Origin: Leucoraja ocellata
Lineage: Eukaryota
DNA length: 64,000 nucleotides
Direction of reading: 5' to 3'
NCBI GenBank assembly: GCA_036785375.1
Contig: JAWMAR010000115.1
Span: forward strand, 4,712,001 to 4,776,000
Shown here: one piece after another, positions 5,533 through 45,918 of the stretch
Layout: each line of letters begins with the position of its first letter
Numbering within the stretch: the stretch's first letter is position 1
Program-made: the position numbers and the translations under genes
The notes under the pieces: generated by a model
Told to the model about the DNA's origin: nothing
Database searches by the model: none
The model's input: only the letters and a program-made list of their open reading frames with translations

Positions 5533-6601
5533 CCAGTTTTTACGATAAGATCGTTTAAAATCCCAAATCCACCAGTACCGTTTGATGGAGTCAGTACCCT
5601 CGACGTTCAGCAAACCTGATAAGAATTTTTAACTCGATCCTGGCATGGGAGTCGACTTTAAACACGATTTGTCTGGAGGAGAGCTCAGTGCAGCTGCCTT
5701 CACTGCTTCATAGCAGCCACCGGAAGTCGAGTCCATTATTTTCAATGTTCATCAATGGTATTGACAAGGAAACAAACTTAATGTTTCTAAGTTTGATGAC
5801 ATGAAACATAGAATAAATAGAAGCAAAGAGGATGCAAAGAGGTTTCCAGATGCTCAGCCAGTCGAGTTACTTGTCAAATATACACAGATATTGCAGCAGA
5901 GAGTCATAGAGCTGTACAGCATGGAAATAGACACATTGACCCAACACACACATGCTGACCAACATGTCCAACTGACCCCATCACAATTGTCTGCACCTGG
6001 CCCATGTCTCTCCAGACATGTCTTTGTGCTCTCCTTACGAGAGAACGGGTTTTTCAGCCACAAAAGGAATACAGCCAAGGCTGACTAGACTGATTCCTGG
6101 AATGGCAGGACTAATGTGTAAGGAGAGGAAGAGCTAACTGAGCCAGTAGTTACTGGAGTTTGGAAGACTTAACAGGACCTCTCTAAACTAAACAAAATTC
6201 AAAGCAGAGCTAGACAGAGCTAGACAGACTCGATACGTAAGGAAATTTCCAGTGACTAGGATCTGGAACAAGGGGTTTTGGACTCAAGATAAGGTGAGAC
6301 ATTTAGGGCTGAGAAATGTCTTCATTGTGAAAATGCCGAGCCATTTAAATTCACCCCACAGAAAATGGTGGATGGCAGGTCACTGAATCTTGTTAAGTAG
6401 GGGATAGATTTATTTGACATAAAATGCATCAAAATTTATCGGGAGAGAATTGGAATATGATATTGTTTTGAATGATTAAACAGGCTCAAAGTGACAAATA
6501 ATCCACCCCTGATTCTCTTTTGCTTGTTTCAATACGTTTGGGGATGGTTTGATGTTTTCTTTGTCCTTCACACTTCTGATGTTTATTGTGCAATTTAGTC
6601 G

Positions 6602-6659
6602 AGATAAAAAACAGGAAGCGAAACAGCCCAGAGCACAGAATAGACGAATCATTGTGGTT
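6602..6659 (+). promoter_or_regulatory. Candidate haematopoietic promoter/enhancer module: GATA, ETS-IRF composite element and RUNX
   Basis: AGATAA at 6602-6607, GGAAGCGAAA (GGAAnnGAAA) at 6614-6623 and TGTGGTT at 6653-6659, about 1.2 kb upstream of the ATG. Confidence 0.5.
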
Positions 6660-7821
6660 AAATTGCAAGACAGCTCTTCATGCAGCCTAACCATTGCTCT
6701 GAATTTTGCATCAGGTCCTGAATGTGATATGGGGAAATGCAGAATCCTTGCTCCCTTAAAACCTCACATTTTTTTATATTCAAAAATAAACTTTATTTCA
6801 GAATAAAACATATATACGAAACTAGTCTGAAGGGTCCCGACTTGAAACTATCCTTGTCCTCCAGGAGTGCTGCCTGACACTGAGTTACTCCAGTATTTTA
6901 TGTATTTCTTTGGTAAACCAGCATCTGCAGTTCCACATTTCTATACAAAACTAACACACTCTTGGTGTCTATACATTCAATAGTGTCACACTCAGTAGTG
7001 TTTGCACCCATCTTTACACAATACGCCATTGACTGTTATTTGCCACTCCTGGGGTGATATCCCTTCCCTTGTATGGGTGACCCACCAGTTCTCAATGACC
7101 AGCAGGGGAAGGACCCAAGACAGTGATCCTCCCTAACAGAGTCTATAAGTTGTTTGTACAGAGCTTCAGTGCGTCCCTCGGCACGTTATACTGCAGTCTG
7201 GAATGGGTCAATCAGCCTCATTCCTAGATGGACCTCTCTTTGTCATATCGTTGTTTTATTCCTCAGCACAGTAACAGTGTATGGGACATGGGGCAATGTT
7301 CCTGTCCTCAAAATCTAGACTTTGACCCACAGTGGGCAGCACCAGAACAAAAATAATGCATTTGAAGATTTGTCTTAAGAAACAAGTAAACAGATTCCTG
7401 TCTCTGTATCACCAGCGTCCTCAAGGAGAGACAACCTGCAATCCTTATACAGTGTGTGCTGTACATGACCACGGGGCACAATAACGTGGGTGACTGTGCA
7501 GTGGCTCAGAATTGGGTCAGTTGAAGGATAATTCAGGATGGCATGAAAGTGTCCACATTTAATGGAAACATTAAAAATGAGAAATGTTCAACTGCTTTTT
7601 CCTTCACCAGTCCTATAGAGCTGCCTCATGACCTCCTGACTCTGATGTTCAATGGCCTTAGCATTGAAGGCAAGCATACCATACACATTCTTTTCTACCC
7701 TATCTACTTGTGCTGCCACCTTCAGTGTCCGATTAACTTGTAGCCCAAATGTGCTGAAGATATGTGCCTCAGATAAGCTCAGTCTAAAACTGCACATTAT
7801 TTCTCACAGGGAATCCACAAA

Positions 7822-7909
7822 ATGAGGCCAAAGTTTCTCTGCAGCGGTTTTCCAGATGGTTTGATGTTCGGTGTCTTTGTTTTCCTGCTTCGATCTGTTT
7901 CCACACAGA
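7822..7909 (+). CDS. Signal-peptide exon ([29 protein letters not shown])
   Basis: ATG in context aaaATG, hydrophobic core, VST-Q cleavage-like site, donor CAGA|GTAAGT in phase 1. A possible acceptor ttctcacag ending at 7809 suggests an upstream 5'UTR exon. Confidence 0.8.
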
Positions 7910-10900
7910 GTAAGTGCTTTCACTTCACCGGTCACAATCACCTTGCTGTACTTTATCATTGTCCGTGTAAACCCGCACCCTTTTGTCAATCTCACTTTCC
8001 TCTACACATCCCTGAATGTGCTGCTGCTCACAAATCCATGCCATCCTTTATGGAGCTCCATTCCTGAGCCCCTCGCATCAACTGCCTCCCCTCAGGAAGA
8101 TATTCCCACCTGTGAGCTTGTTGCACAGGTCGCTGCCCAAGAATCACCCGCAATATCTTCACTTCACGCTCCCGCACAGTTCCGTCGTGCTGCCACAAAC
8201 AATAAGTGAGTTCTGTATTCTGAATAACGCAAGGAATCATGGGATTTTTCAAAGTTAGTAAGCTATAACAGTAAATAGATCTCAGCGTTATAGATACAAT
8301 GAGTATACTTTTGGTCCGATTTTTTGTCTTTTGTCATGGTTGATTCAAAGTTCCAAGATATGAAGCTGGAAGATTTTATGTCATGGAAACTCGAAGCTTT
8401 GAAGATTTTCTTAGCAGAGAGGGGTTAAAAAATATGGGACGAAAAGCTGTACTTGTAGCTCTTGCTGTAGCTACAGCAATTTAAATCAGTCCAAAGAACT
8501 CCTTAAAGTCTATTGAAAGTTATAGAAATCAAACATTTAATTTCACTCCCCCCACCCTCAAGAAAAAAAAAAAAGCGTATCATTTATCTTGGCGATCTCG
8601 CTCACTCATGGAGGCATGAACCAATAAAAACGAGAAAAATATCGCAGCTTTTTACAAAGGAAAATAAATGCAACAAATTAATAGTTTTAAACGGTATTTC
8701 CTTACTATAGTACTATCGAAACCACAGAGGAAATAAAGCCCTGTTTACACAAATCAGCTCAGCGCCCCTCGAGAGATCGGGGTGGGGGAGAGACCGGGGG
8801 GGGGGGGGGGGGGGGGGTGGGGTGGATGGGTGGGGGGGGGGGGGGGGTGGATGGGGGGGGGGGGGGGACCGGGCGGGAGAACCCCTGGTTCTCTTTGCAT
8901 GTTTCAATAGGTTTTGGGATGGTTTGATGTTTATTTGTCCTTCACACTTCTGATATTTATTTACACATTGTGAAATTTAGTTGAGATAAAAAATCAGGAA
9001 GAGAAACAGCCCAGAGCTCAGAATAGACGAATCATTGTGGTTAAATGGCAAGACAGCTCTTCATGCAGCCTTGACCATTTCTCTGAATTTTGCATCAGGT
9101 CCTGAATGTGATATTGGGAAATGCAGAATCCTTGCACCCTTCAAACCTCACATTTTTTAATATTCAAAAATAAACTTTATTTCAGAATAATAAAGACCGG
9201 GCGAGGGGGAGACCAGGCCGGGGGGGGGGGGAGACTGGACCGGCTCTCATCCGGAGAACCGCGTCTCGTTTGCAGTCAGGATCGGACCCGTGTCCCCGCA
9301 ACTACAAATGCTGCCGAACCGCAAGCGTTGCATAACCGTCACTGGACCGTCCCCCGGTAACCCCCCCCCCCCCCACCACAACATCCCCTCCCCCCACCAC
9401 TCCCCCCCCCCCCCTAAATTCCATCATTGCTCCTCTTTCCAACAGAAATCAGAAATCTGGTTTATTTCTTGGATAATGGAGGCAACATTACGTTAAAAGG
9501 ACCGGACAATCCTGGGAGTGACGTTGTTTGGGAATGGAAACCACACTCAGGGCATGGAATCCAGACAGTGTTAACTGGCAGCAGAGCGGACAAGCATTGG
9601 ACCATCCAGTGGGGCGATGGCTGGAGAGAGAGACACAAGAACCAGGAGGTGGATGTGGATGCCAGTACTTGTAATCTGACAATAAAAAACAACGCATTTA
9701 AATGGGCGGGATTTTTCACTTTGTCTAAAACACAACCGAGGAAGCAAATCCTGAAACAATATGAAATATTTGGGATCAAAGGTGAGTGGGCGATACACGG
9801 ATCAATAATGTGTTTCTCTGTATGTAAAGTCACATGTAAATCTATGTTTTGATGTTAATACTCCAGTCACTCTGGGCTGTGGGTAATAATTGGGCTACAG
9901 TTAAGGGCCTGTCCCCCTTACATAACATTGTCACGCAAATTGCACGACCTCGTGGTCGTGTTGAGGCGCACGGGCATCCTATGGCCACGTGGGGCCGGTC
10001 CCACTGAGAGGAGGGGTATGTAGTTGTGCGTGACATCGCGCGGGGCCCCAAAATTTCTGTAGCGAGCAAAATCTTTGCGCACCAACGGCTTGTCGCATAA
10101 CTGACGGCCAAAGTGGGACCGGCCCAAGACGCTGAAGCGATGCAATTTCTCACCTGCAACAGCAGCAGAAGCAGGCAAACGATCGCCGAGCTCGGCCTGG
10201 GGCTCACGCCGTTGCAGTCCGGTTCCGCCCCCACTTCTACTCCCAGAGCGGGGCCAAGAAAATTGAAGGTAGACACAAAATGCAGGAGTAACTCAGCGGG
10301 ACCGGCATAATCTCTGGAGAGAAGCAATGGGTGATGTTTCGGGTCAAGAGCCTTCTTTTCAGATTGAAGAACAGAATCTGTCATCTGTCATGTAAAACGA
10401 AACGTCACCCATTCCTTCTCTCCAGAGTTGCTGCCATTCCCACAGAGTTACTTTGTGTCCATCTTCAAATGACGTCACGCGCTCCAGACGGTAGTGTGTA
10501 CGCATTAAATCGTGCGTGACCCTCGTGGGACCGTCACGGCTCAACGTTACCATGAGGTCGCGTAATTTGCGGGCCAAGGACAAGTAAGTGGGACAGGCCC
10601 TTTAGTTTCTTCACTTTTCTTTGATCACAGACAATCGCAGTAGCAGGTAACTCAACATGTCCACCAGGGGACTTTTATACGCTCCACAAATTAATTCCCC
10701 AATACAACAGTAGGAACCAAATGACTAACTCATAAGATTAACATAAATATCTGATACAATAATTATAATATAATTCGTAGCCTTATAATGACAACAATAG
10801 AAATAATTATAATATCATTAGTAGCCATATAATGACTTNNNNNNNNNNNNNNNNNNNNNNNNNNNNNNNNNNNNNNNNNNNNNNNNNNNNNNNNNNNNNN

Positions 10901-13900
10901 NNNNNNNNNNNNNNNNNNNNNNNNNNNNNNNNNNNNNNNNNNNNNNNNNNNNNNNNNNNNNNNNNNNNNNNNNNAATGCAATACAATACAACTTAGATTA
11001 CAATCTTCCCTTGCTACAAAAAGAAATGTCCTTATTTAAACAGTGACCAACAAGCCACAGCACTGGCAATAGACACAACAAGTGTCTGGAGGAACTCAAC
11101 AGGACAGGCAGCATCTCTGGAAAGAAGGAATGGGTGACGTTTCGGGTTGAGATCCTTCTTCTTCAGACTGGTTAGGAATAAGGGAAACGAGAGATATAGA
11201 CAGTGATGTGGAGAGATAAAGAATAATGAATGAAAGATATACACAAAAGTGACGATGGTAAAAGAAACAGGCTGTTTGTAACGTGAAAATGAGAAGCTAG
11301 TGTGAATAGGGTGGGGGAGGGATGGAGAGCGAGGGAATGCAGGGGCTACCTGAACTGAGAGAAATCAATATTCATACAACAGAGCTGTAAGCTGCCCCAG
11401 TGAAATATGAGATGCTGTTCCTCCAATTTGCATTTAGCCTCACTCTGACAATGAAGGAGAACGAGGACAGAAAGGTCTGTGTAGGAATGGGTATGTCAAT
11501 TGAAGTGTCCAGCAACTGGGAGATCATGTTGGTTCACGTGGGCTGAACGATGGTGTTCCGTGAAACAATCGACCAGTCTGCCTTTGGTCTTGCCGATGTA
11601 AAATAGTCCAAATCTTGAACAACGAATACAGTAGATTAGGTTGAAGGAGGTGCAAGAAAACCTCTGCCTCACCTGAAATAGCTTTCTGGGTCCCTGCACA
11701 GAGCCAAGGGAGGAGGTATAGTAACAGGTGTTGCATCTTCGGCGGTTGCAGGGGAAGGTATCTGGGGAGTGGGTGGTTTGGGTGGGAAGGAATGAGTTAA
11801 CCAGGGAGTTGCGGAGGGAACGGTCTCTGCGGAAGGTGGGAAGGGTTGGAGATGGGGAAATGTGGCTAGTGGTGGGATCCCGTGGCAAAATTTTGGAGGA
11901 TTATATGTTGTGTACAACTGCTGATGGGACTAGGGGGACTCTGTCTCTGTTGTGACTAGGGTGGAGAGGACGCAAGGGCAGAGCTGTGGAGTACCGAGGA
12001 GACAAGAGTGAGGGCCTCATGAATGATGGGAGAGGGGAACCACGTTGCCTAAAGAATGAGGACATCTCATATGTTGTGGTATGGAATACCTCATCTAGAG
12101 TGCAGATGTGGTGTAAAAGGAGGAATTGAAAGTAGGGGATAGAGTCTTTGCAGGAAGCAGCGTGGGAAAAAGTGTAGTTGAGATAGTTTTGGGAGCAGGG
12201 GGTTTGTAATTGATATCAGTCAATAGTGTATTTCTTGTGATGGAGACTGTGATATCAAGAAAGGGAAGGGAGGTGTCAGAGATGGTCCAAGAAAATGTGA
12301 AAGCAGGATGAAAATTGGTGGTGAAGTGGATGTTCCATGAGTTCTGCATGGGTGCATGAGTTAGCAACGATGCAGCATCAATGTAATGAAGATAGAGTTT
12401 GGGGATATGGCCAGTGTATGCCTGAAACAGGGATTGTTCAACATACCGAACCAATAGGGAGTCATAGCTGGGGCCAATGCGGGTGCCCATTGCTACGCCT
12501 GGAACATGGAGGAAGTGAAATGAGTCAAAGGAGAAGTTTTTGAGGGTGTGGACCAGCACCGCTAACACCATCACTAATTTCATCACTTCTGGCTATGTGC
12601 CTTCCACAGCCTCCAACCATATAGTTTCCCAGCCCCGCAAAGCCAGTTTTTACCTTCTCTCATAGGCCTGGCCAAGTTGGCCACCTGTGAGTCATGGCAC
12701 CAGGTGGATGAGGGCTCTGCCCGAGCCAGCTGCCTGCCGCTTTTCCGGGATTACGTCCATGCCCGGGTGGTTTTGGAGAGGGACTATGAACTCTGGGGGA
12801 ATTCCGGGACCATTGGGCTCCGCAGGGGGTTGAATGCATCCTTGACAAGGACTGTAAGATAGTTGTATAATAGTTTATTGTTTGGCTTGTATTATGGTGG
12901 TGGGTTGTGTTGTGTTTTATTGTCTTCTAAATATTACTTTAATATTTGAATAAATGTATTGAACAGCAACAATGTAACTGTGTAGACCGATACTGGTTCA
13001 GATGAGTTTATTGTCATAAACACCAGGATGAAAATACATTTTTGTTCACATGAAGCTCATTGAGTAAAAGTTAATGATGGATAAAATTATAAACACAATA
13101 AATGCAACACAGCAGAATGGTGTAGAGTTTTCAGAGCTATCTGAATGAACGCAAAATAAAACTAAGGTACAATAACTGCAAGAACATGTGACAGCACCAC
13201 CAGGAAGTGCGAGTGAAGGTGATGTCAAGAGTCTGAAATCACTGGGAAATCACTGGGAAAGAAGTTGTTCTTCAGTCTTTATGTCTACGTTATCAGTTGA
13301 GGTGAGATTGAGCCCAGTCATTGGACTGTCCACACCACTACCCACTCTGAATCTCATTGATCTGTTTTTCACAGTTGAAGCAACTCCACAGAGCCCTCTG
13401 CTGGGCAGTGACGTCACACTCAGCTGCACCATCTCCAGACTGTCAGATACAGTCAGTCTTCACTGGAGACCAATGGACTCATCCCAGCAGAACAGGTGCA
13501 ACACTGATCAGATCCGCCTGAATAACACGGTCTATCTGATGGTTCGACATGTTACAGTGGAGGATGGGAAGCTGTATGTGTGTGAAGTGCAGGAAAATGG
13601 AAAAATCGTTCATACAAGTAACGCCAATTTTAATGTTATTGAGGGTGAGTGTCAATACCTCATACTAGATATTGAACATACACTTGTACCATTGGTGCTC
13701 ATTATAATATCATGTGTGCACCCCGTAAAGAATTGTAGTTTGTGTCCGAAATCTAATTTGTACAAAATGCTTCAGTGTTCAGGGAGAAGCTTCCAGAAAG
13801 TCTCCCTGTGGAGCAGCTGCCTGTTCATCTCTGTTTGACAGATACACAATATTGAAAGAATGAATTCTAATATGTTTAGTAAGAGTAACTCAGTGGGGCA

Positions 13901-16900
13901 TTACTGGAGAACATTAATAAGTGACGTTTTGGGTCAGAACGTTTCTTCAGATTGAAATGATTCCAGCTGCTCCAGACTCGGGCTTCAGATCAGCATTCAG
14001 CTAGGAGCAGGACCCAGGGAGAGGGAAGGGTTGGGAATCAATGGGTGTGAATGGGAGAGGGATGGTGGGAATAATGGGAATGAAGTGAAGGTTGGGATTG
14101 GATGCAAAGAGAGGTAGCAGGCAGCTGATGTGAAAGAGAGTGGGGTAGGGCTGATGTTTGCAACATGCTGGTTCTGTATGAGGGTGAGCGAGAGGGTCAG
14201 GACACGTTCAGCATTCCCACGGGGGAGTCACTAAGATGCCAGACCAGCTCATAATTGTGTAAAACCCACCCCATGAAGAAGTCAGTCCTCCTGTGATTCC
14301 AGGTTAATGTGTTCACACCATCTTGTTCTGTAACCTGGTCACCCTGTGCTCTTCATCTCTCCCCCAAGCTCCCTGTAGAACTGTCTCTGCTGTGTAGACA
14401 TTAACACGGACACGAGTGTTGCAAACTCTGCCGGGGTCTAACGTGGAAGGGTCACCATCCAATATATTGTAGACATGAAGAACTGCAGATACTGATTTAC
14501 AAAAAAGAGACAAAGTGCTGAATAATGGTGAATCGGGCAATATCTCAGGATGCTGCCTGGCCCACGTTTTGGGTCGAGACCTTTCTTCAGACTGATTGTA
14601 AAAGGGGTAGAAAGCTGGAAGAGGGTTGGGGGTGTGACAAGGCCTGCAAGTGATAGGGGGACATAGGTGATGGGGGGGGGGGGGGTTGTTGATTAACAAA
14701 TGGTCGGACAAAGGCCAGACATAAAATTGTGAACCAGTGTGATATGATAACGATAGAAGACATGTGGGGGGAGGGGGATGCCTACATGTTAGTAACCAAA
14801 CACTGGATAATTCAATGTTTGTATCATTGGGTTGCAAGCTATTCCAGCAGAATATGAGTTGCTGTTGCTCCAGTTCAGAACTCCGCGACTGGACAAGAGG
14901 AGGAAATGATTTATGTGGGGCAGGGGTAGGCAGAACCAATGGGTCTGCCAGGGCTGCCCTGTTTGTGGTGTTTCAGAAGGAGATAGATAGGGGCTGGTGG
15001 ACGATTAGGTTGGAGACTGTGGATGGGTGATCGCCAGAGATGATGAAATCAGTGACATTCTGGGAGATGGTGGCCTGGTGCCTGTATTGTAGTGGGCATC
15101 TGTTTTATATTTAGAAAAAAACCTGAAGTGTTTTGGTGTGGAATTCATGCAAGAAGTCACATTTTGAAACTTATCAGATGAACAAAACACAAAGAATTTT
15201 AATAAAAACCTGGTTGGGAATTTTTACCTGATTACCCCTGTGCCTCAGTAACTGTGATGCTGAAAGGAGTTCTATTCTTTTGTCTCTCTGCTATAGACAT
15301 ATACAGCAAACGTCACACACTTTACCGCACCAGCACAGATCACAGTGAAGTCCAGCTGGTTTGCTATTTTCTTCCTGTTTTCAACATTGCTTCTGGCGTG
15401 TGGACCTGGACATCTAGTCGCCTAAATGACGAGGACAAAGTAATAGCATCAGCAACATTCTCTCAACCCATCAATGTCGCCAATACAGCTTTTAAGAATC
15501 GACTGATGACCTCAGTGAAACACTTCAAAGGCGAGGATTTTAGTGTGCGGATTGTCCCAGTTTTGTTTGAAGATGCTGGAGTTTACAAATGTTCAGCAGG
15601 AACATATCTATATATCACCATTGATCTAATCACAGTGAAAGGTAGGAGACAGAATGCTGCCAGTGTTTTCACTGATGAACTAATTGTTTAAAATATAAAC
15701 AACCTGCTTGTTTCCACAGTCACAGCTGAACCGTCCGATGCAGTGACTGAGGGAGACAACGTTACCCTGACCTGCTCTGTGTCTCACGTCACTGAGTCAA
15801 TGAGACTGGTTTGGATCAATGGCGATGACAAATGTGTTGGAGAAAAGACACTGACCGTGGAAGAGAAATCACTGAGTCTGGTTATTCAGAAAGTTGAGAG
15901 GGGCAGAGGGAATTGGAGATGTGGTTTGTTTCATCAAGACCTGCCCCGGCTTTTAGTCCCATACTATCAGGAGACCAGTGGTAAGTGACTCAGGATTTGC
16001 TCTTCATACTTAGAATCAGGATCACATTTTGATGTCACTTATTGCACTATTTGCCAGTATTCACTCCTCCTTTGCAGCCTATGTGGGATGATTTGCTGTG
16101 GTGTAGTCCCTGGGAATATGGACCATGGGATAACTCCGTGCCCCTGGGTTAATATTGAAACTTCACCTTTCTATGTGTCACTGATGGGAAAGTGGGATAG
16201 TGACAGAGCTGGGACAAGCATTGGGTCCTGTCAGCAAAACAGAGCCTTTCCATTTGACCCTGAACCAATTCCACTGCCAGAATCACTGTCCAAAGTCCAT
16301 CATGCCCATACTGACCGATGTTGAACACAAAGAGACCATCTCACTGATCCTCCTCACTCGGAGCACAGCTGGACCCTGGAGTGTTCAGGATATCTGGATG
16401 GAGAACGCTGTTTACATAAGCAGTCCTGCCACCTGTGGTACTATAAACTGTGCAATCATAGAATCATGCAGCATTGGAATGGGCTGCTTACCCATTTCAT
16501 CCATGTTCACCAGTTATACATGTCAATAATGTCCCGTCAGAGACCTCAACTCCATGGCAAATAGATTTTGCTTATCTAATCTCTTCTCAAGTAGCATCCT
16601 GTCAATCTCCTCTATACCTTCTCCAGTGCTACCACATCCTTCCTGTCATTTGGTGACCAGACTGCATACAGTACTCCAGCTGAGGTCTGACCAAAATTTA
16701 CACATCTGCCGCATAACTTCCCTACTTCTGTGATCTATGTCCTGACTGATGAACACACTATCCCGTGTGCCTTTCCAACCACATTATCTATTTGTGTGTC
16801 CACGTTCAAGGATCAATGGACGTACTCCAATGTCCCTCTGTTTCTCAATAATTTGTCAGACCTTGTAATTCATGGTGTATGTCCTAGCCCCATTTGTGCC

Positions 16901-28900: not shown

Positions 28901-31900
28901 GGTCCGACAGCTTTTCTTTCCTCATCCAGGTCTTACCTGTTGAATAGGTCTTACCTGAAGAGAAGATTCGGCGGCTACTCTAATGTCACCCCTGATAGCA
29001 CTGTTCACTGCCGGCACTTGTAGCGTGAGGGGAACTCTGGCCCCTTCCGGGTATTCTGCCAATGGCTGGTAACCGACTCTTCTGGCAGCAACACCTTCGT
29101 TTGCGAGGATTCCCAAGAAGACATGCGCATGTGCTCCAGTACGACATACTTTAGAATTTAAAGTCAGTTACACACTGACCACTTGCACTCCCCTCCACAG
29201 AGAAGGAGATTCATAGGCAGCCCTGAAACAGGTGCTGCCGCAGGCCCCTGAGGATACCTGCGCTGATATGGCCCCTCCTATGGACCTATACCAGGATGGG
29301 ACATCACATTTGTGAGATAAACGCCTGAGGGCGCTATCCATGCTCCATTTTACCCATAGATCATGAGTCAGAAAACTGACCCCGAATGCTCCCCTTCTCA
29401 GAGAGGGAGACATTGTGCAGCCCTGTAACAGGTGGCTGCTGCCGCGGGCTCCCGAGGAGTCCCGGAATGATAGCTCCCTCCATTGGAGCATATCATTGTG
29501 GAGCAAACTCTCCATTAGGTACTCCATGTGGGTTAGACGTCCGAAGACACTATCCATTGAAGGAGGGGAACCCTCATGGCCTGACTTGCCCGAGTCCAAA
29601 GGCCTGACCTGCATTGTTGGTTTTACCCCCTTTCAAGGGTACCACAGCAGTCTGGGAGCCGCTGATCATACTGTCAGCGACTGGTGTGACTTCTCCGGGA
29701 TTTACTCCCTCCATGGGAACCATAGCGTCTGGGAACCACTGACCGCATGTCAGCGACTGGGGTAGCGAACCCGCACTTCCGCGGTCCGGACCGGAGTCTA
29801 CCCACGGCCCATAACCGGTTTTCCCGCAGCCCGTCCGGACTTCGCCCCGAAAATATCCAGCAGGAAACCTCTGTAAAAAGAAGTTCCTGCAAGAAAAAAC
29901 AGAACCTGGTAAGGAATACAAAACTTACCTGCAGGTTTAAACTTACCGCTGGCAGGAGAGAAGTACCTGCCAGTCAGTCGTTGCATAATGCGTCTGCGTA
30001 ATTGACGCGCATGCGTTCTGACGACCTTCTTCACGTAGTCACTCACGTGACTCCGAAGTAAAATAATAAAAAGGACTGGACAAGCTAGATGCAGTAAAAA
30101 TGTTCCCAATGTGGGGCGAGTCCAGAACCAGGGGCCACAGTCTTAGAATAAAGGGGAGGTCATTTAAGACTGAGGTGAGAAAATTTTTTTTCGCCCAGAG
30201 AGTTGTGAATTTATGGAATTCCCTGCCACAGAGGGCAGTGGAGGCCAAGCCACTGGATGGATATAAGAGAGAGTTAGATAGAGCTCTAGGGTCTAGTGGA
30301 GTCAAGGGATATGGGGAGAAGGCAGGCAAGGGTTATTGATAGGGGACGATCAGCCATGATCACGATGAATGGCGGGGCTGGCTCAAAGTGCCGAATGTCC
30401 TCCTCCTGCACCTATTTTCTATGTTTCTATGTTTCTATATGCTGCTTGCAGAGTAACCTGTTACAACAATAGTGGTCACTATTCTGAACGTCTCACTCAG
30501 ATGCTCCTCAAATAATGTCCATATTCCTCTTTACCACCGGAAGTTGCTGATTAATCTTTGGAGTCATCTTGAAATATGAAAAAGCCTACAATTCATGGAG
30601 GGTGTTGTGTCCAGCACTGTGGGCAGTGGGAGCGTTGTGGGAATTGGTGCTTATTCTCAAAGTTGGTGTTCTCAACGTTGGTGCAAAAGCTTGTCAGTGA
30701 TCCTTTGGATTAGTTCTACAGGCATCAGGTTTAATAAAAAACATTGGGCAGAAACTCCAGCTGTTGTTTTAATTCTCAGTGAATTTCTTGTTTCCCAGCT
30801 GAACAATCTAATGCAGCGACTGAGGGAGACAACGTTACCCTGACCTGCTCTGTGTCAAAGGTCACTGAGGCAATGACACTTGTTTGCATCAATGGTGATG
30901 GCAAAATAGTGGGAGAGAAAATTTTCAAGGAGCCAAGGCAGGAAGAGACATCTTTACAGCTGATCATTCCAAAAGCTGTTGCAGACAAAAGGAATCATCG
31001 CTGCGGTTTGTTTCTTCACAATACTCCCAAGGTTTTAATTCCATATGGTAAGAATTCATTGCAACCCAATGGTAAGTGTCTTGTCTTCTGCTCTTTGTAA
31101 TTTCCACAGAAACGTAATATTATTTATTTCTTCTAACATATCATATTTCATAACCCACTGCGGTTAGTATCTCTGGTAACTCCTGCCCACTCTGTGGAAG
31201 GGTCTGTGGATCCCACATTATCATCAACAGTAACATCTGAATCCGCAAAACTGGAGAATTAAAAAAAAACATTCTCAGGACTATACGTAGATGTCAGTAG
31301 CATGCTGTTACTGTAGATAAATGTGACACATTTGTCCAGAAATTGGATATCACCTATTCCTTGGGCATTAAGTGTGTGGCGTAGTTACTCCTAGTATCCA
31401 ATGACTGCCTCCTCAAGATCACAAATGGGATGAGAATTAATTTCAAAATTAGCTTTTGGACATTTTTGTCCTGAAACAACAGAGGAGTTGTGTCATTATC
31501 ATTGGGGCGATGGGTGTGTCCTATCACACACAGACATTAATTCAAGACAACGCTCAGACACACAATGAGCACTGTTGCATTTGAGATATATTTTATCAAG
31601 CCCTTCCTCATGTCTCCATCTGCACTTTCATTCAATGATTCAGAAGTCAAGTGAACTCAATAAATATCCAACAATATTTAATGCTTTCTGCTTTAACACT
31701 TCTTCGGGAAAGCTTTGTTTTGCCGACCCTGCAGTTTCAATACACCAACACATGTAAAACTCTCCTGGCAACAGCAACTTTCTTCATGATGGTAACTGTG
31801 AGCTTTTGGTTGCTGTTTATTTTCTCCTGCAGAGCAGCAGTCTCCCTCTGGGTGAGGACAATAGGGCTCTGACTACAGTCGGCTGAGAGTCCACCGAGGA

Positions 31901-34900
31901 ATGAAGACTTTGTTTGTGCTCTGCCTGTGCCTCAGTGACAGTAGAACCCTGCTCCAGCAGCCGCTGCACCAGGGGAGAGGCCACCCCCACACCCACTCCC
32001 ACTGTTGTGTCCCCAACCCTTTGATTGGAAACCTGTGCTCATGGCTCTACAGAAAGCCGTGCAGAAGGTTGGAGATGGGATCTCTGACACTCCTTGACAT
32101 CTCTTCCATGCTGTAAGGCAGAGAAACCTTCCCATGTACTCATCCTCATCACAGTTTCCATCAGACTCCTCTGGGGCAGATCTGAATTTGAACCCTGACC
32201 TCCAAGGAGTTGCTATACAAGCCTCCCAATCCTTTGGTCTAACTACAGCCGACTGCTGCCCAGTCTGAAGTGTCCAGCAAGTGATGGAGCCTTAAACTAC
32301 ATGGGTTTGTGAACAGATTGGCAGGTGTGCAGCATTGATGAACTGGTCAACCTTACTAGAAGAAATGAAAGATTATGCACAAAAATGCACAGAAGAATTT
32401 TCTGCTGCATTGCAATAGAATAGCAATAGGTTGGTCTAGTTCTTGATCAAAAGAAAAAGAAGTACATCTGATTAAATATGAAATAAAATCAGAGAATGCT
32501 GGAAGCATTCATCAGGTCAGAAAGCATCTGTAGAAAGATGAATATAATGAAGGTTGCTGATTGAAAATGTTTTGTGAGAATCCGTCAAAGTATTTTCAGA
32601 CAAAAAAAATAAATTTACACTACTTCAATCTGCACTACAATCTGTGCACCATTCTGCTATTTTGGGCATTCCTTGTAGGAATCCTTATAGCATTTGTCAC
32701 GCATACTGTCAAAAAGGCTTTCAGTACATTCGCCTTGATCAGTCAAAGGATTGTGTATAGAAGTTGGGATGTTATGTTACAGTGTACAAGACGTTGATGA
32801 GGCCGCATTTAGAATATTGTGCTCAGTTTTGGTCACCCTGCTATAGGAAAGATTTTGTTAAACTGGAAGGAATCAGAGAAAATTTATGAGGACATTGCCA
32901 GCACCTGAGGGCCTGAGCTATAGGGAGAAGTTACCAGGCTTGGACATTATTCCGTGGACGGCAGGAAAGTGAGGAATGATATTATAAAGATGTTTAAGAT
33001 TATATGGGGAATAAATGGGGTAAATGCACAGTCTTTTAACCAGAGTAAGGGAATTAAGCTGAGAAGGGAAAGATTAATAGGATATTGAGGCAACATTTTC
33101 ACACAGAGGGAGCTGGGTATATACATTAATAGACATTAGCCAATAGGTGCAGGAGTAGGCCATTCAGCCCTTTGAGCCAGCACTGCCATTCAATGTGATC
33201 ATGGCTGATCATACCCCATCAGTACCCCGTTCCTGCCTTCTCCCCATATTCCCCAACTCCGCTATCTTTAAGAGCCCTATCTTGCTCTCTCTTGAAAGTA
33301 TCCAGAGAACCGGCCTCCACCGCCCTCACAACTCTCTGTGAGATAAAGTGTTTCCTCGTCTCCTTATTCTTAAACTGTGACCTCTGGTTCCGGACTCCCC
33401 CAAAATTGGGAACATGTTTCCTGCCTCTAGCATGTCCAAACCCTTAACAACCTTCTATGTTTCAATAAGATCCCCTCTCATCCATCTAAATTCCAGAGTG
33501 TACAAGCCCAGCCGCTCCATTCTCTCAGCATATGACAGTCCCGTCATCCCAGGATTTAACCTTGTATTAGCTGCCAGAGGAGTTAGATGAGGCATGTATG
33601 ATAACAACATTTAAAAGACATTTTGGGAAGTGCATGGATAATGAAGGTTTAGAGCAGTGGTTCTTAACATTTTTGGCAACAAATTGATATGTTATTTATG
33701 ACCCCTTCATGACCCCTTGCAAAGCCCCAAACGACCCCCCACCCCCGCCCACCCCCCCCCCCCCCCCACCCCCACAGGGGGTCATCACCCCCACGTTAAG
33801 AACCACTGGTTTAGAGGGATATGTGCCAAATGGGTCCAAGTAGGACTCGAGTGGATGGGGCAGCTTAGTTGGCATAGGCAAGTAACGGGGAAGATCCTGT
33901 TTCCCTGCAGTTTGAATTTATCATTATAGAACCCTTGGACAATGGGCAGCATCACAGCTGACTTGGATCCAGCTATCTGCACATATCTCACGCCAGACAG
34001 GGTCGCCGAATTGAAAGCAGGAACAATAACCTGGTGTCATTTGTTTCCTGTTGTTAACTGATGGGTACTGAGGTCAGTTATAGCTCTCAGATCTTCCTGA
34101 GCGAGGTCTGCTAACCTGGATCAGGAAGTAAGTCCAGGACCTCTGGACTCTGCTGGTTAATTATAAACTAGACCACATGATTACAGCTGGAAGATTGGAA
34201 ATGCTTTGGAATGATGGTTTAGAAACTCAAAGTAACATCTGTGCTTATTCTTCTGACAGATTCTTCCCCTCCAAAGGAAATTATTAATATCATTATTATT
34301 AGCATCGTGGCTTCTCTGCTCTTCATTATCCTGACGGTGGTAGTGTTTTGGGGAATTCGTAAGTGGAGAGGTAAGGTGCAATTTTTTTTCTCAATGTGCT
34401 ATAGAGAAAAGAACAGTTACTGGAATTAAATGAATGAATGAATAAATGTATTGGCCAAGTATATTCACATACAACGAATTTGCCTTGGTGGTCCGCCAAG
34501 TGACAACATGACATACAGTGACAGTTAGGAATGACACATAAAACTTTAAACATTAATAAACGAACATTATCGATTAAACATGAATGAAATAAAATACCAG
34601 AGCAAAAGGAGGCTACAGATTTTTGGATACTGAGTAGAGCTGCTACTCGTGTATAAAAGCTGTGTTTATGTCTGTCTGTGGCAGCTTTGACAGTTCGGAG
34701 TCGCCTTCCAGAAGAAGTTATTCAAAGAGTTTATGGCCAGGGTGAGAGGGGCCAGAGTGAGAGATCCTGGCCCTTGCATTGTACAATTTGTCAATGGAGG
34801 GAAGGTTGCAGCCAATTACCTTCTCAGCTAATCGGACGATTAGCTGCAGCCTCTGGATGTCGTGCTTGGTGGCTGAGCCAAACCAAACCATGATGTAGAA

Positions 34901-36437
34901 TGTGAGGACAAACTCTCCGATGAACATCTACGAATTGGACCATGTGCCTGTGGTAGATTGTGCTTCCTCAGCTGCCGCAGGAAGTTCATCCTCTGTTGTG
35001 CCTTTTTGAATGTGGAGTCGATGGTGCCTCCCCCCCCCCCCCCCCATTTAAGTTACTTGGAAACTATGGTTCCCAGAAACTTAAAAGATGCCACAGATGT
35101 GACTGTGGTATTGTTGATGGTGAGTGGGGTGAGGGGAGGGGGTGCTCTCCTAAAGTCTGCAATCAATTCCACTGTCTTAAGAGCATTGAGCTCCAGGTTG
35201 TTACGATGGCACCAGGATGCCAGCTGTGTCACTTCCTGTCTGTAGGCAGATTCCTCCACATCCTGCATCAGTCCATAAATGTGTTTGTGTTTCTGTTGTT
35301 GAGAAGGTGGATTTCACTTTTTTCAGTTCGCTAAAACATTATTATGTCTGAGCTATCAATGTTGTCATGACCAATCTCCTTTGCCTTCAGATCACTTGTG
35401 TCCAACTGAGAGGGCAGAAAGATCTTAGTTTTACAAATAATCACAATGATAATCTCTGATCAGGTGGTACTTCCAATACGGCAGCAATCCCATAATACGG
35501 CAGTAGAGTGTCAGTTTCTATTGTATGATCAGATACTCTTCCAATCTGGTGTGCGTCTTTCTATGTTATGGCACATGGAGTCTATCAGAGAGATACCAGG
35601 GTATGAACAGAACATTCTTTACTGAAAGCAGTAGCTCGCAACTAAACAGCAGTGCCTGGAGCACTGATCATGTGCATGGTGCCGCCCCTCCATTGGTCTG
35701 GCCACTCCTGTGATGCTGACCATCAAACAGCCTGATTGATGTTGCCCTTATGTTAGATTGGTTGCTGCCTCAGTGCTGAATCTCCATGGGCCTGGCCATT
35801 TCCCTCAACATCATCCTCCACAAACCTAAGTGTTGAAAATTCTGCTCCAAAGTTCCCAGCAACAAAAGAGACACATTTATTGGAACAATATTCAATGTTA
35901 ATTTAATTTAGAAGTAATCCCATTCTTATTTTGCTCTATGTAATCAGACTTTATCGGATTTCAATATTCCATATATCCCTAAATGTTGTCCCTGTTTTCC
36001 TTGATCTATGCACTGTGGAAAGCTTGATTGTATTCATGTATTATACTTTTCCTTGACTGGAAAGCACACAAACAATAATGTATTTCAGTGGTCTAGTCTA
36101 GTCTAGTCTAGTCAACACGAAGGTCTCAAAAAGCTGGAGTAACTCAGCGGGACAGGCAGCATCTCTGGAAAGAAGGAATGAGTGACGTTTCAAGTCGAGA
36201 CTCTTCTTCAGATCCAAAACGTGACCCATTTCTTCTCTCCAGAGATGCTGCCTGCCTGCCTCGCTGAATTACTCCAGCATTTTGAGTCCATCTTCGGTTT
36301 AAACCAGCATCTGCAGTTCCTTCCTATACTAAACGAAGGCCTTGACACTTATATAAATTGATTCTTCATTTCAGTCTCTGCAGAAACAGAAGATATCCAT
36401 TATGGATCTATCACCTTCCAGAAAAAAGCGGCAACAG
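7822..36437 (+). CDS. Multi-exon IgSF type I membrane receptor: signal peptide, 8 Ig domains ((V-C2-V-C2)x2), TM and ITIM-like tail; CD4/LAG-3/G6F/DICP-like architecture; at least about 900 aa, last exon not located
   Basis: Eleven exons joined by hand at canonical AG/GT sites: 7822-7909, 9446-9781, 13375-13644, 15297-15641, 15720-15980, 18156-18494, 19743-20015, 20816-21154, 30799-31071, 34260-34370, 36375-36437. All introns are phase 1, every internal exon length is a multiple of 3, and there are no in-frame stops (2698 nt, 899 codons plus 1 nt). Confidence 0.88.
8891..9191 (+). repeat. Direct duplicate of 6518-6805 (regulatory module) inside intron 1
   Basis: Long colinear match with scattered substitutions and small indels. 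AGATAA (8984-8989), GGAAGAGAAA (8997-9006) and TGTGGTT (9036-9042) are retained. Confidence 0.92.
9446..9781 (+). CDS. Ig domain D1 exon (V-like, no canonical disulfide)
   Basis: ctctttccaacag acceptor and AAAG|GTGAGT donor. Translation ...GNITLKGP...VVWEWKP...CNLTIKN...AGFFTL...YEIFGIK. Paralogous to D5. Confidence 0.85.
9904..10601. mobile_element. PIF/Harbinger-type MITE
   Basis: TIRs AGGGCCTGTCCC(C/A)CTTAC and GTAAGTGGGACAGGCCCT, flanked by TTA at 9901-9903 and 10602-10604. Confidence 0.85.
10263..10468. repeat. Fold-back element made of two inverted Penelope-terminus copies, inserted in the MITE
   Basis: Arm ttgaaggtagacacaaa...gggtgatgtttcg is the reverse complement of cgaaacgtcaccc...ttgtgtccatcttcaa. 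Confidence 0.75.
11069..12660 (-). mobile_element. Penelope-like element (RT and GIY-YIG endonuclease), 5'-truncated and decayed
   Basis: [12 protein letters not shown] and LPFLDI RT motifs; CNRRRCNTC...LIYCIRC...YIGKT...RL...EH GIY-YIG region; terminal repeat with hammerhead-like core. Confidence 0.93.
12661..12960 (+). mobile_element. Tx1/L1-type LINE 3' fragment
   Basis: [17 protein letters not shown] resembles a Tx1 ORF2 C-terminus, followed by a T-rich UTR and AATAAA. Confidence 0.55.
13375..13644 (+). CDS. Ig domain D2 exon (C2-like)
   Basis: tttttcacag acceptor and GAGG|GTGAGT donor. GSDVTLSC...LHW...DGKLYVCEV has canonical C-W-C. Confidence 0.92.
14470..14890 (-). mobile_element. 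Penelope-like 3' fragment
   Basis: [23 protein letters not shown] resembles the PLE C-terminus, and the terminus is similar to 11069-11450. Confidence 0.7.
15297..15641 (+). CDS. Ig domain D3 exon (V-set)
   Basis: ctctctgctatag acceptor and AAAG|GTAGGA donor. QLVC...WTW...NRL...DFSVRI...EDAGVYKC is the V-set signature. Confidence 0.93.
15720..15980 (+). CDS. Ig domain D4 exon (C2-like, WxC motif)
   Basis: tttccacag acceptor after a 78-nt intron and AGTG|GTAAGT donor. EGDNVTLTC...LVW...NWRC. Confidence 0.92.
16470..17170 (-). mobile_element. Old CR1 LINE fragment
   Basis: Degenerate CR1 RT sequence (PQGLVLGP-like and EYAVW-like). Confidence 0.6.
17440..17715 (+). mobile_element. tRNA-derived V-SINE-like element
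   Basis: B-box gggttcaatcc and central domain ctccggtttcctcccacat. Related copies at about 41465-41580 (+), 46950-47277 (-) and 48860-49170 (+). Confidence 0.7.
18156..18494 (+). CDS. Ig domain D5 exon (paralog of D1, cysteine-free)
   Basis: ttttctggcag acceptor and AAAG|GTATGT donor. LKGPDSPG...LEWSPH...LDLRI...AGLFTW...WELFVIK. Confidence 0.87.
19743..20015 (+). CDS. Ig domain D6 exon (paralog of D2; F-strand Cys replaced by Trp)
   Basis: gtttccacag acceptor and CAGG|GTGAGT donor. [13 protein letters not shown]...LYTWEV. Confidence 0.9.
20816..21154 (+). CDS. Ig domain D7 exon (paralog of D3, V-set)
   Basis: ctctcttgcag acceptor and ACAG|GTAGGA donor. DLIC...WTW...FADAGVYTC...TIDLITV. 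Confidence 0.92.
21274..21585. mobile_element. Harbinger-type MITE
   Basis: Imperfect TIRs ccctgtcccacggt...gttcattccaagag and ctcttggaatgaac...tgtgggacaggg, in a TWA context. Confidence 0.7.
26950..27362 (-). mobile_element. 5'-truncated L1 insertion inside DIRS
   Basis: Poly(T) on the + strand, ORF2 C-terminus [17 protein letters not shown]...WGPF, and TSD GCACAATAACCC(TTT) at 26938-26952 and 27363-27377. Confidence 0.9.
28287..28452. repeat. Tandem repeat of about 36 nt (about 4.5 copies) within DIRS
   Basis: Unit approximately ctggccataattctgagcctgcctcgaaagacaact, with diverged copies. Confidence 0.8.
30799..31071 (+). CDS. Ig domain D8 exon (paralog of D4); alternative in-frame donor after 31047
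   Basis: ttgtttcccag acceptor. [20 protein letters not shown]...LVCING...NHRCGLF. Donors G|GTAAGA (31048) and G|GTAAGT (31072). Confidence 0.85.
32705..33910 (+). mobile_element. CR1 3' fragment with a nested antisense CR1 3' fragment (about 33126-33566) and a hAT MITE
   Basis: [11 protein letters not shown]-type remnant on +, and a CR1 3'UTR on -. Confidence 0.8.
33655..33808. mobile_element. hAT (Charlie-type) MITE
   Basis: 14-bp TIRs CAGTGGTTCTTAAC and GTTAAGAACCACTG. 8-bp TSD GTTTAGAG at 33647-33654 and 33809-33816. Confidence 0.92.
34260..34370 (+). CDS. Transmembrane exon ([37 protein letters not shown])
   Basis: ttcttctgacag acceptor and AGAG|GTAAGG donor. Hydrophobic stretch of about 23 residues with no charged residue, followed by the stop-transfer RKWR. 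Confidence 0.88.
34428..35275 (-). mobile_element. Rex1/Babar-type LINE 3' fragment
   Basis: [32 protein letters not shown]...FKFLG and a (TTCA)n tail. Confidence 0.85.
36125..36286. repeat. Fold-back inverted Penelope-terminus element
   Basis: 36125-36191 is the approximate reverse complement of 36216-36286. Confidence 0.8.
36375..36437 (+). CDS. Cytoplasmic mini-exon with ITIM-like motif ([21 protein letters not shown])
   Basis: ttcatttcag acceptor, with a second in-frame cag ending at 36383, and ACAG|GTAAAT donor. 63 nt, phase 1-1. I-x-Y-x-x-I preceded by acidic residues. Confidence 0.78.

Positions 36438-45879: not shown

Positions 45880-45918
<39 letters not shown>

Follow-up and report, generated by a model that had tools for sequence, protein, structure and literature searches.

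Does the forward strand of a 64,000-nucleotide stretch of Leucoraja ocellata DNA, hereafter the window, encode a single receptor with eight Ig-like domains, and, if so, which receptors are its relatives? The initial annotation had answered that eleven exons splice into one open frame for a (V-C2-V-C2)x2 ectodomain, an uncharged transmembrane (TM) segment and a tail with IHYGSI. Our exon-by-exon check of the window recovered all eleven on the + strand with AG acceptors and GT donors and added a twelfth, giving twelve exons with GT..AG borders and 0 stops in frame, which encode a signal peptide, eight Ig domains arranged as (V-like, C2, V, C2)x2, a neutral TM segment, the IHYGSI mini-exon and one further cytoplasmic mini-exon. 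The gene thus described probably encodes a type I membrane protein with signal peptide, eight Ig-like domains, uncharged TM and mini-exon tail, and would be the orthologue of two skate gene models, LOC129701496 and LOC116978604, within a family apparently of paired receptors.

Exon structure and the joining of two four-domain units

Exon 1 (7822-7909) supplies the start codon and a signal peptide of 29 aa and ends in a phase-1 GTAAGT donor; 29 of 29 signal-peptide residues are the same in little skate LOC129701496 and thorny skate LOC116978604, and it is the sole signal-peptide-like match within the window. D1, a V-like domain without canonical cysteines and with an LKGPDNPG motif, is contained in a single exon (exon 2, 9446-9781) and is followed by D2 (exon 3, 13375-13644), a C2/I-type Ig domain with LYVCEV in its F strand (Pfam Ig_3 E 9.7e-7, ig E 3.7e-5), by D3 (exon 4, 15297-15641), a V-set domain with canonical cysteines (GVYKC; Pfam V-set E 1.9e-5), and by D4 (exon 5, 15720-15980), a C2 domain whose F strand reads WRC (Pfam ig E 2.7e-6). 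The second unit begins with D5 (exon 6, 18156-18494), again of D1 type, and continues with D6 (exon 7, 19743-20015), a C2 domain identified by its tblastn match to D2 and its splice borders, in which Trp replaces the F-strand Cys (LYTWEV). It is completed by D7 (exon 8, 20816-21154), a V-set domain (GVYTC) that passes the Pfam cut-off (V-set E 1.7e-6), and D8 (exon 9, 30799-31071), a C2 domain with HRC in place of WxC and Cys for the C-strand Trp. All junctions from the signal-peptide exon to the ITIM exon are in phase 1. The WxC motif ascribed to the ectodomain earlier is therefore confined to D4 (WRC), D2 having YVC and D6 and D8 the residues just given.

Per-domain HMM searches gave Pfam Ig matches for D2, D3, D4 and D7, whereas D1 and D5 had no Pfam match at E<=1, save one chance-level match for D1, and a profile built on both had no PDB match. 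We call D1 and D5 V-like by profile-profile comparison with D3 only, the family's D1 columns aligning with its D3 columns at 95.2% probability (hhalign, E 2.6e-8). D2 resembles D4 at about 95% probability by the same method, as if the four-domain unit had arisen by duplication of a V-C2 pair. PDB matches of D3 itself were weak (MXRA8 and pIgR, E about 1e-3) and covered the generic E-F strand region only. As for the doubling of this unit, searching the whole window with D1-D4 (tblastn) recovered D5-D8 in the same order with identities of 37%, 61%, 47% and 59% (E 3e-20 to 9e-31) and nothing comparable elsewhere, and this collinearity, together with the exon order, bears out the proposed (V-C2-V-C2)x2 ectodomain.

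The orthologues provide a second view of the junctions. LOC129701496 (Leucoraja erinacea, XP model, 851 aa) and LOC116978604 (Amblyraja radiata, 532 aa) are computational gene models, nameless and with no paper or function attached; per-exon identity is 90-100% to little skate and, for the exons that its model contains, 89-100% to thorny skate. Identity to LOC129701496 is 97% for D1, 95% for D2, 90% for D3 (the lowest of the eight domains) and 99% for D4. Neither model holds all twelve exons, as LOC129701496 ends by read-through after D8 and LOC116978604 skips D2-D5. However, all eight junctions from the signal peptide to D8 have the same predicted residues in LOC129701496, and those joining D8, TM, ITIM and the second mini-exon equal LOC116978604, so that taken together the predicted orthologues support every junction.

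Two adjoining genes, one for a secreted D1-D4 protein and another for D5-D8 with TM and tail, might instead meet between D4 and D5. Read-through from D4 meets a stop after two codons, a little-skate paralogue model (P0129) does end by read-through after D4, and four-domain members of the family exist. Yet the 2175-bp D4-D5 interval contained no signal-peptide exon and no TM-like stretch, D4 ends in a consensus phase-1 donor (GTAAGT), and D5 is preceded by a strong phase-1 acceptor (ttttctggcag). Furthermore, LOC129701496 has the identical residues YYQETS-G-TTIYLF across this junction, D4 is linked to D5 by the residues predicted here in the thorny-skate models P0055 and P0011 as well, and the two D1-type domains lie one four-domain unit apart in 36 of the 42 family proteins that have two. 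We regard a pair of separate genes as highly improbable and conclude that the locus has the extent of one gene, with just one signal-peptide exon and just one homologous TM exon.

Assembly features and repeats leave this reading frame intact. An assembly gap (N, 10839-10974) falls within the AT-rich D1-D2 intron and leaves all coding frames untouched; as the little-skate orthologue has only the junction codon between D1 and D2, the gap should hide no exon, and the frame is independent of it, while the length of the D1-D2 intron is an assembly value only. A high-copy short repeat (17439-17637) in the D4-D5 intron, where many DNA contigs break, reached a summed DNA contig depth of 117,241 vs about 80 in adjacent bins (run X6), and the bin of the D4 exon had about 50x the summed depth of its neighbours. 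The 9.6-kb D7-D8 intron harbors a LINE fragment on the + strand (22106-24663) with endonuclease and reverse transcriptase domains (Exo_endo_phos_2 1.2e-7; RVT_1 8.1e-19), and outside the receptor gene the window holds LINE fragments only and no recognisable gene.

Membrane anchor, tail and the last exon

D8 can be spliced from either of two phase-1 donors, one after 31047 and one after 31071, of which the distal one is used in the thorny-skate orthologue. Exon 10 (34260-34370) encodes a stalk, an uncharged TM helix and an RKWR stop-transfer signal. It is one of two TM-like segments between 31050 and 37000, the other (32639) having neither splice context nor homologue. Exon 11 (36375-36437), the ITIM mini-exon of 21 aa with IHYGSI, is in phase 1 at both ends and has homologues in the first ITIM exons of many relatives, and with it the uncharged TM and IHYGSI tail proposed earlier hold. 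Matches of the ITIM exon to the tails of five relatives gave E 0.01-0.05, the queries being short, and the same cassette is the difference between Mobula isoforms X1 and X2. The exon absent from the earlier list, exon 12 (36849-36892), encodes the cytoplasmic peptide HRDGKSPSNQEIDM and ends in phase 0 at a GTCAGT donor. In LOC116978604, 31 of 35 aligned residues of the TM exon, 20 of 20 residues of the ITIM exon and 12 of 13 aligned residues of exon 12 are the same.

IHYGSI, with Ile at +3, fits the broad ITIM consensus. It falls outside the narrower consensus (I/V/L)xYxx(L/V) quoted in PMC10768021. The thorny-skate orthologue continues into a last exon (YLASS...VIYAQIAQTKM) that carries a second ITIM and whose counterpart would be expected on the + strand at 36893-64000, but tblastn with relatives' tails did not find it in the readable window, and motif scans of 34370-50000 and 36893-50000 returned nothing convincing. 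A weak match at 37344 was rejected on account of a stop codon and the lack of flanking similarity. N gaps at 39247-39378 and 46026-46232 fall within the region expected to hold this exon, which may sit in one of them. The earlier designation of the receptor as inhibitory is an inference: the second ITIM exon is not in the readable window, and the little-skate model would be secreted.

This last point admits a different reading, according to which a secreted eight-domain protein is the main or only product and the TM and ITIM exons are little used or relics. LOC129701496 ends in 17 read-through residues that match the window, where read-through from D8 likewise reaches a stop 17 codons past PY, the terminal exon was not found in the window, and TM is absent in 10 of the 42 two-D1-type proteins, several of these ten being partial models. 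Read-through ends are, on the other hand, a common artefact of gene prediction made without evidence. The TM, ITIM and mini-exons of the window have open frames and proper splice sites, and their identity to the spliced LOC116978604 is 89-100%; such conservation between skate genera is unexpected for unused sequence. We thus consider a mainly secreted product rather unlikely, albeit with some weight, and favor the membrane protein as the principal form. Since all Ig exons are in phase 1, the gene could also yield shorter products, among them secreted ones through read-through after D4 or D8, and shorter or secreted forms are predicted in relatives.

The missing exon also bears on whether the gene is decaying, its 3' end lost and D8 degenerating. 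D8 has lost two otherwise conserved tryptophans, and the combination of a core Trp changed to Cys with WxC changed to HRC occurs in 1 of 33 eight-domain relatives (HRC and LVCIN each in little-skate LOC129701496 only), while the introns are full of LINE fragments. However, none of the twelve exons has a broken frame or splice site, and an unread N gap may contain the missing exon. The D8 changes, like the Trp-for-Cys change in D6, the TM and the ITIM exon, are common to the window gene and its orthologues, and since the little and thorny skate genes carry them in frames that are also open, the D8 changes must be old and tolerated. A pseudogene is therefore very unlikely, and the D6 change is characteristic of the relatives at large (LYTWEV in 25 of 33 eight-domain proteins, W at that position in 30 of 33).

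A chondrichthyan receptor family

By sequence similarity, the gene belongs to a large chondrichthyan family represented in sharks, rays and chimaeras and entered as 'uncharacterized' in databases. At E<=1e-50, a search with LOC129701496 returned 88 protein clusters, none of them bearing a curated name or one that denotes a function, and a profile seeded by D1 and D5 of the window picked out, at E<=1e-3, only 37 of 1.84 billion representatives. Names obtained for 30 of these 37 comprised 21 chondrichthyan and 7 ray-finned entries and 2 without a name. Our literature search found no paper describing the family, and the suggestion of a multigene, possibly undescribed family thus holds. Its supposed confinement to cartilaginous fish was contradicted by collinear four-domain homologues in sturgeon, paddlefish and bichir, the sturgeon protein showing 26% identity over the four collinear domains (E 3e-52).

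Nor is the doubled ectodomain the peculiarity it had been taken for. Members carry one, two or more four-domain units, and 42 of 150 retrieved proteins have two D1-type domains, the spacing in the 36 regular cases being 397-417 residues. Twenty-six of the 42 possess a TM followed by a tail of 90 aa or more, and both family ITIMs (IHYxSI and VIYAQI) are present in 23 of these 26. Of the 42, 21 have Y[SA]N (YxN) in the tail. Eight domains with two ITIMs are thus the family norm in sharks, rays and a chimaera, and such proteins already exist as RefSeq/UniProt predictions. In a tree of the domains, shark and ray domains separated into a D5-type clade (support 96) and a D1-type clade (support 98), within which D5 and D1 of the window, respectively, were nested. 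Mean pairwise identity among the 33 eight-domain proteins was lowest in D1 (50.6%) and highest in D6 (77.3%).

Most members have a neutral TM and a two-ITIM tail. A lysine-containing TM (GYLxVKL) without ITIM is found in 14 of the 150 retrieved proteins, and the coexistence of ITIM-tailed and tail-less lysine-TM forms looks like that of a paired receptor family. In this respect the family resembles other paired receptors (CEACAM, LILR/KIR, SIRP and Siglec; NITR, LITR and MDIR in fish), with which it has in common a clustered multigene organisation, ITIM-tailed beside short-tailed lysine-TM members, a variable distal domain and alternative tail cassettes, but from which it differs in the types and order of its domains. 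Passages of PMC3031540 describe MDIRs as composed of CD300-, TREM- and pIgR-like domains; no MDIR-named protein appeared among the named matches, and we set MDIRs apart by this description only.

Relation to known receptors and proposed function

Profile and language-model comparisons hint at G6F-like, LAG-3 and CD4 as the nearest known families, and we claim membership in none. With LAG-3 and CD4 the gene has in common the V-C2-V-C2 order and WxC in the D4 F strand, the unit here being doubled, and with LAG-3 in addition a tail of inhibitory type. In a PDB search with the family profile, LAG-3 came first (E 2.7e-12), its alignment spanning both V-C2 halves and keeping WxC in register, and CD4 reached 1e-8; LAG-3 led by only about 3 bits, the scores being 49.1 for LAG-3, 46.3 for CEA, 45.6 for pIgR and 45.2 for NCAM. 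A profile of D4 alone was unspecific (LAG-3 E 6e-3, CD4 E 1.7e-4, both after DIP-alpha and CEA), and the domains had no Pfam C2-set or CD4-extracel matches. Several hallmarks also fail: CD4 and LAG-3 have an intron within the D1 coding region, whereas D1 of the window is one exon (9446-9781). For CD4/LAG-3, a duplicated V-C2 pair has been proposed, with a WxC motif in the F strands of D2 and D4 alike and with the tail motifs Cx(C/H) in CD4 and (F/Y)xxL(D/E) in LAG-3 (PMC10768021); in contrast, WxC is missing from D2, D6 and D8 of the window and D1 is without disulfide, and neither tail motif occurs in the tail exons found so far, namely the translated TM, ITIM and mini-exon. The proposed CD4/LAG-3 link is thus weak.

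G6F-like proteins may be at least as close, a lead that comes from language-model scores only. Clusters named 'g6f-like' were the two best language-model look-alikes of the sturgeon homologue and took ranks 3 and 6 for a nurse-shark family member, scores that are to be read as leads. Passages of PMC3528668 describe teleost G6fL as a thrombocyte collagen receptor with four Ig-like domains, a TM, a tail with YxN and an ITAM split over two exons. A tail YxN is frequent in relatives of the window gene as well, but the gene itself has eight domains and an ITIM, and its tail exons found so far contain neither ITAM nor YxN. CD2/SLAM receptors combine a V domain without disulfide with a C2 domain and carry the ITSM TxYxx(V/I) in the tail. 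Membership there was rejected, as IHYGSI has Ile, not Thr, at -2, and the only trace of that family was a Pfam Receptor_2B4 match of D2 (E 0.051).

The family might instead be the cartilaginous-fish branch of CEACAM and no kin of G6F-like, CD4 or LAG-3. CEACAMs start with a V-like domain without disulfide, followed by C2-type domains only, and are not known to have internal V-set domains. D1 is likewise an N-terminal V-like domain without disulfide with C2 domains after it, the tail in the family has two ITIM-type motifs, CEA was the fourth-best PDB profile match (E 1.9e-11 vs 2.7e-12 for LAG-3), and one isoform is auto-named 'CEACAM5-like' in RefSeq. Passages of PMC3628338 and PMC4079198 report a CEACAM homologue among little-skate ESTs. 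However, D3 and D7, which occupy internal positions, are genuine cysteine-bearing V-set domains, and the language-model look-alikes of the family member and of the sturgeon homologue were g6f-like, CD4 and LAG-3, with no CEACAM name among the matches listed. A CEACAM origin thus appears unlikely to us.

In the membrane receptor that we favor, a repeat unit of a V-like domain without disulfide, C2, V and C2 with WxC is present twice. The distal variable domains, D1 and then D3, would bind ligand, and the conserved D5-D8 unit may serve as a stalk. Upon phosphorylation, the ITIM tyrosine would recruit SH2 phosphatases and dampen activation, and an ITAM adaptor would be the partner of the lysine-TM paralogues.

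Gene structure in the window and its skate orthologues

Splice-site and frame reading revealed a gene of twelve exons on the + strand (7822–36892), with AG acceptors and GT donors throughout and no internal stop codon. The eleven exons that the initial annotation had joined into one open frame are all present with these borders, and a twelfth, absent from its list, is added here. Exon 1 (7822–7909) encodes the signal peptide and is followed by the exons for D1 (exon 2, 9446–9781), D2 (exon 3, 13375–13644), D3 (exon 4, 15297–15641), D4 (exon 5, 15720–15980), D5 (exon 6, 18156–18494), D6 (exon 7, 19743–20015), D7 (exon 8, 20816–21154) and D8 (exon 9, 30799–31071, with a second possible donor after 31047), the transmembrane exon 10 (34260–34370), an ITIM mini-exon (exon 11, 36375–36437) and a further mini-exon (exon 12, 36849–36892). 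All junctions from exon 1 through exon 12 are in phase 1, while exon 12 ends in phase 0. A run of N (10839–10974) sits within the AT-rich D1–D2 intron; because D1 passes directly to D2 via the predicted junction codon in P0088, the predicted little-skate orthologue, no exon is expected in this run and the frame is independent of the gap.

Window-derived queries were single exons, each searched separately. Pfam assigned D2, D4, D6 and D8 to generic Ig families and D3 and D7 to the V-set, with no real match for D1 and D5; all families returned were generic Ig families. In tblastn against the whole window, D1–D4 matched D5–D8 with the order kept (identities of 37, 61, 47 and 59%), and no other comparable matches were obtained there.

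Several observations bear on whether D1–D4 and D5–D8 belong to one gene or to two. The D4–D5 interval of 2175 bp contains neither a transmembrane-like stretch nor a match to leader peptides of the family; the donor of D4 is a phase-1 consensus site, and the acceptor in front of D5 is strong. The closest database protein, P0088 (LOC129701496, 851 aa), shares 100% identity in the signal peptide and 97, 95, 90, 99, 96, 97, 95 and 91% in D1 to D8, respectively, and at all eight junctions from signal peptide to D8 this computational model carries the residues predicted by the window splice sites, including ...YYQETS-G-TTIYLF... at D4/D5. D4 likewise continues into D5 in two thorny-skate paralogues, P0011 and P0055, which are also computational models. 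Judged from its sequence, the locus is a real receptor gene, well conserved among skates, and its orthologues are already present in public annotation.

No run recorded as RNA was found for the stretch. Over 5,951 nucleotides, run X1 gave no coverage, and the sequencing runs X6–X8 are DNA, because their reads cover introns like exons. At 95% likeness in X6, the summed contig depth over the D4 exon (15648–15846) exceeds that of the bins around it about 50-fold (4327 versus about 80), and D5, D6, D7 and the end of D3 stand 2–6 times above the bins next to them. Even proteins of distantly related sharks and rays share an almost identical first half of D4. These observations suggest that the D4 exon either exists in numerous near-identical paralogous copies or has undergone gene conversion. 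Within the D4–D5 intron, a very high-copy short repeat, probably a SINE, occupies 17439–17637 (summed depth 117,241 in X6) and interrupts the contigs in each of the three DNA runs. When compared with the little skate, D3 (C–C' region, 15299–15640) is the least conserved domain (90%), with the differences bunched in one 17-residue stretch of the window that corresponds to FLPGSDISSDVCTWTYS in the little skate and could be a diversification hot spot.

A 312-bp stretch 5' of exon 1 (6505–6806) recurs in intron 1 (8881–9190) with 90.7% identity. The window end (61710–62707) resembles the upstream flank of the gene (5736–6459) at 74–78% over about 290 and 440 bp, which would fit either the next family member starting just past the window or a shared repeat. 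Besides the receptor gene, no recognisable genes were found in the window; fragments of LINEs, carrying domains of the reverse transcriptase and the endonuclease, lie at 840–3398 (−), 22106–24663 (+), 51755–52826 (+) and 57381–57950 (−). Long G or C homopolymer-like tracts occur in introns and flanks (8796–8867, 9366–9413, 33735–33773 and 37038–37083), some matching one another on opposite strands.

Membrane anchor and cytoplasmic tail

The C-terminus of P0088 consists of 17 residues past D8 that are read into the intron, and the same read-through would be possible in the window, where 17 residues are followed by a stop. The predicted thorny-skate orthologue P0128 (LOC116978604, 532 aa) comprises the signal peptide, D1, D6, D7 and D8, with D2–D5 skipped, and uses the distal D8 donor. 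Beyond D8 it is identical to the window in 31 of 35 aligned residues of the transmembrane exon, in all 20 of the ITIM exon and in 12 of 13 of the mini-exon, after which its last exon runs YLASS...VIYAQIAQTKM. This last tail exon was not found by tblastn in the readable window (two downstream N gaps being unread), using the tails of eight relatives and that of the thorny skate, and motif scans for it over 34370–50000 and 36893–50000 returned nothing. A weak match at 37344 was rejected owing to an internal stop codon and absent flanking similarity, as was a second transmembrane-like stretch at 32639 that had neither splice context nor a homologue.

The inhibitory tail proposed in the initial annotation is overstated, being incomplete in the window: the IHYGSI exon is present, but the last exon with the second ITIM was not found in the readable window. 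At the level of predicted sequence there is good ground for the neutral transmembrane segment and the first ITIM, though not for the full tail, and the 3' end of the gene is incomplete in the assembly. Among relatives, the difference between two Mobula isoforms, X1 and X2, is the ITIM cassette.

Size, architecture and history of the family

Searching 1.84 billion representatives with a profile of D1 and D5 retrieved 37 proteins (E ≤ 1e-3). Names were looked up for 30 of them: 21 came from sharks, rays and chimaera, seven from sturgeon, eel and cypriniforms, and two were nameless. Word-index searches yielded 62 matches at E ≤ 1e-5 with the Mobula protein P0002 and 88 protein clusters at E ≤ 1e-50 with P0088, and source names place the family in about twenty species. 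Almost all matches are labelled uncharacterized or hypothetical, with a few automatic names (obscurin-like, VCAM1-like, CEACAM5-like); in the literature searched, we found neither a description of a LOC129701496-like family nor the published source of the nurse-shark 'obscurin-like' record. The gene belongs to a large multigene family without a published description that we could find, and the earlier view of it as an ITIM-bearing eight-Ig receptor gene of such a family was right in outline.

Domain architecture was surveyed in 150 fetched proteins; the sampling is biased, and isoforms and partial models are among them. D1-type domains were counted at a threshold of 40 bits, since D3-type domains also score 13–19 bits against the D1 profile. 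One, two and three D1-type domains all occur. Two were present in 42 of the 150 proteins, spaced by 397–417 residues, i.e. one four-domain unit, in 36 of these 42. The eight-domain form is not special to this gene, a point that the initial annotation overstated. Three were counted in four proteins. These models with at least 12 Ig domains, P0001 (Scyliorhinus canicula, 1710 aa), P0064, P0067 and P0068, stem from catshark, sevengill shark, red stingray and white shark and could represent either genuine additional rounds of unit multiplication or gene models that were fused.

A transmembrane segment with a tail of at least 90 residues was found in 26 of the 42 proteins with two D1-type domains, and 23 of these 26 carry both IHYxSI-type and VIYxxI-type ITIMs. 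In 14 of the 150 proteins (e.g. P0063, P0010, P0059 and P0133–P0135) the transmembrane segment contains a conserved lysine (GYLxVKL...GLI), the tail is short and ITIMs are absent; these proteins are candidates for the activating counterparts of the ITIM forms. Because two-ITIM members and lysine-bearing, ITIM-less members both occur, the family looks like a paired inhibitory/activating system.

The four-domain unit appears to have arisen by an old V-C2 duplication, because hhalign pairs D1 with D3 (95.2%, E 2.6e-8) and D2 with D4 (95.6%, E 1.1e-8). A quick maximum-likelihood tree was calculated from 156 D1-type domains after removal of 27 identical rows and exclusion of domain matches below 40 bits or 95 profile positions. 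Inner (D5-type) domains of sharks and rays grouped in one clade (support 96), in which 49 of 51 rows are internal, and outer (D1-type) domains in a separate clade (support 98), in which 76 of 77 rows are N-terminal. Because inner and outer domains form separate clades, this tree dates the doubling of the unit to before the shark/ray split. The chimaera pair and one Heterodontus subfamily fall apart from the main clades and may have doubled independently.

Across 33 eight-domain proteins, D1 and D3 varied most (mean pairwise identity of 50.6% and 55.5%) and D5 and D6 least (71.4% and 77.3%), a pattern consistent with an outer tip that varies and an inner unit that is conserved. The replacement of Cys by Trp in D6 (LYTWEV) is shared by 25 of the 33 and, by this distribution, is old. 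The D8 changes HRC and LVCIN each occur in one of the 33 as well as in the thorny skate and are limited, among these 33 proteins, to the orthologue group of the gene.

Relationship to known receptors and implications

A profile of 26 four-domain members gave LAG-3 as best PDB match (E 2.7e-12), followed by CD4 (1e-8), and both V-C2 halves of LAG-3 align onto D3–D4 with WxC in register. The tie to CD4 and LAG-3 drawn in the initial annotation is nevertheless weak and was overstated: CEA, pIgR and NCAM follow LAG-3 within about 3–4 bits, and several hallmarks of the two receptors fail. WxC in D2, named as a hallmark of CD4 and LAG-3 in one account, and, in the tail exons found, the motifs Cx(C/H) or (F/Y)xxL(D/E) listed there (PMC10768021) are missing in the window gene. 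Against PDB, a D4-only profile was not specific, the D1 and D5 profile gave no match, and single exons D1–D4 gave generic Ig matches or none. CEACAM would be an alternative home for the family. Two reports mention a CEACAM homologue among little-skate ESTs (PMC3628338, PMC4079198); the internal V-set domains of the window gene argue against this home.

Among language-model look-alikes of a nurse-shark member, g6f-like clusters ranked third and sixth and CD4 clusters fourth and fifth. A sturgeon homologue, which aligns with four domains of a sawfish member in the same order (26% identity, E 3e-52), had g6f-like clusters as its top two look-alikes, with CD4 and LAG-3 lower and mammalian G6F lower still; both rankings serve as leads only. 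G6F-like proteins, LAG-3 and CD4 appear to be the nearest known relatives. G6fL is described in one report as a thrombocyte receptor with four Ig domains, a YxN motif and an ITAM (PMC3528668), while MDIRs are characterized elsewhere as CD300-, TREM- and pIgR-like (PMC3031540). No MDIR-named protein occurred among the family matches, MDIRs being compared by description only.

As a single gene the locus is smaller news, being conserved in skates, with orthologues already annotated and an incomplete 3' end. No living lineage that has an adaptive immune system of the human type is older than sharks and rays, yet to our knowledge few inhibitory or activating Ig receptor families have been described in them. 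We propose tentatively, and with less than even confidence, that the family is an ancient, undescribed paired-receptor family of cartilaginous fish with ITIM-tailed and lysine-transmembrane forms, sister to G6F-like/CD4/LAG-3, in which a V-C2-V-C2 unit was multiplied, its doubling preceding the shark/ray split, and the outer unit diversifies while the inner one is conserved. If true, sharks and rays would gain a functional counterpart of LILR, KIR or CEACAM, and the family would show the receptor pool that gave rise to the MHC class II co-receptors. Should the kinship with G6F-like proteins, LAG-3 and CD4 hold, the family would bear on the origin of V-C2-V-C2 co-receptors and on the multiplication of domain units.
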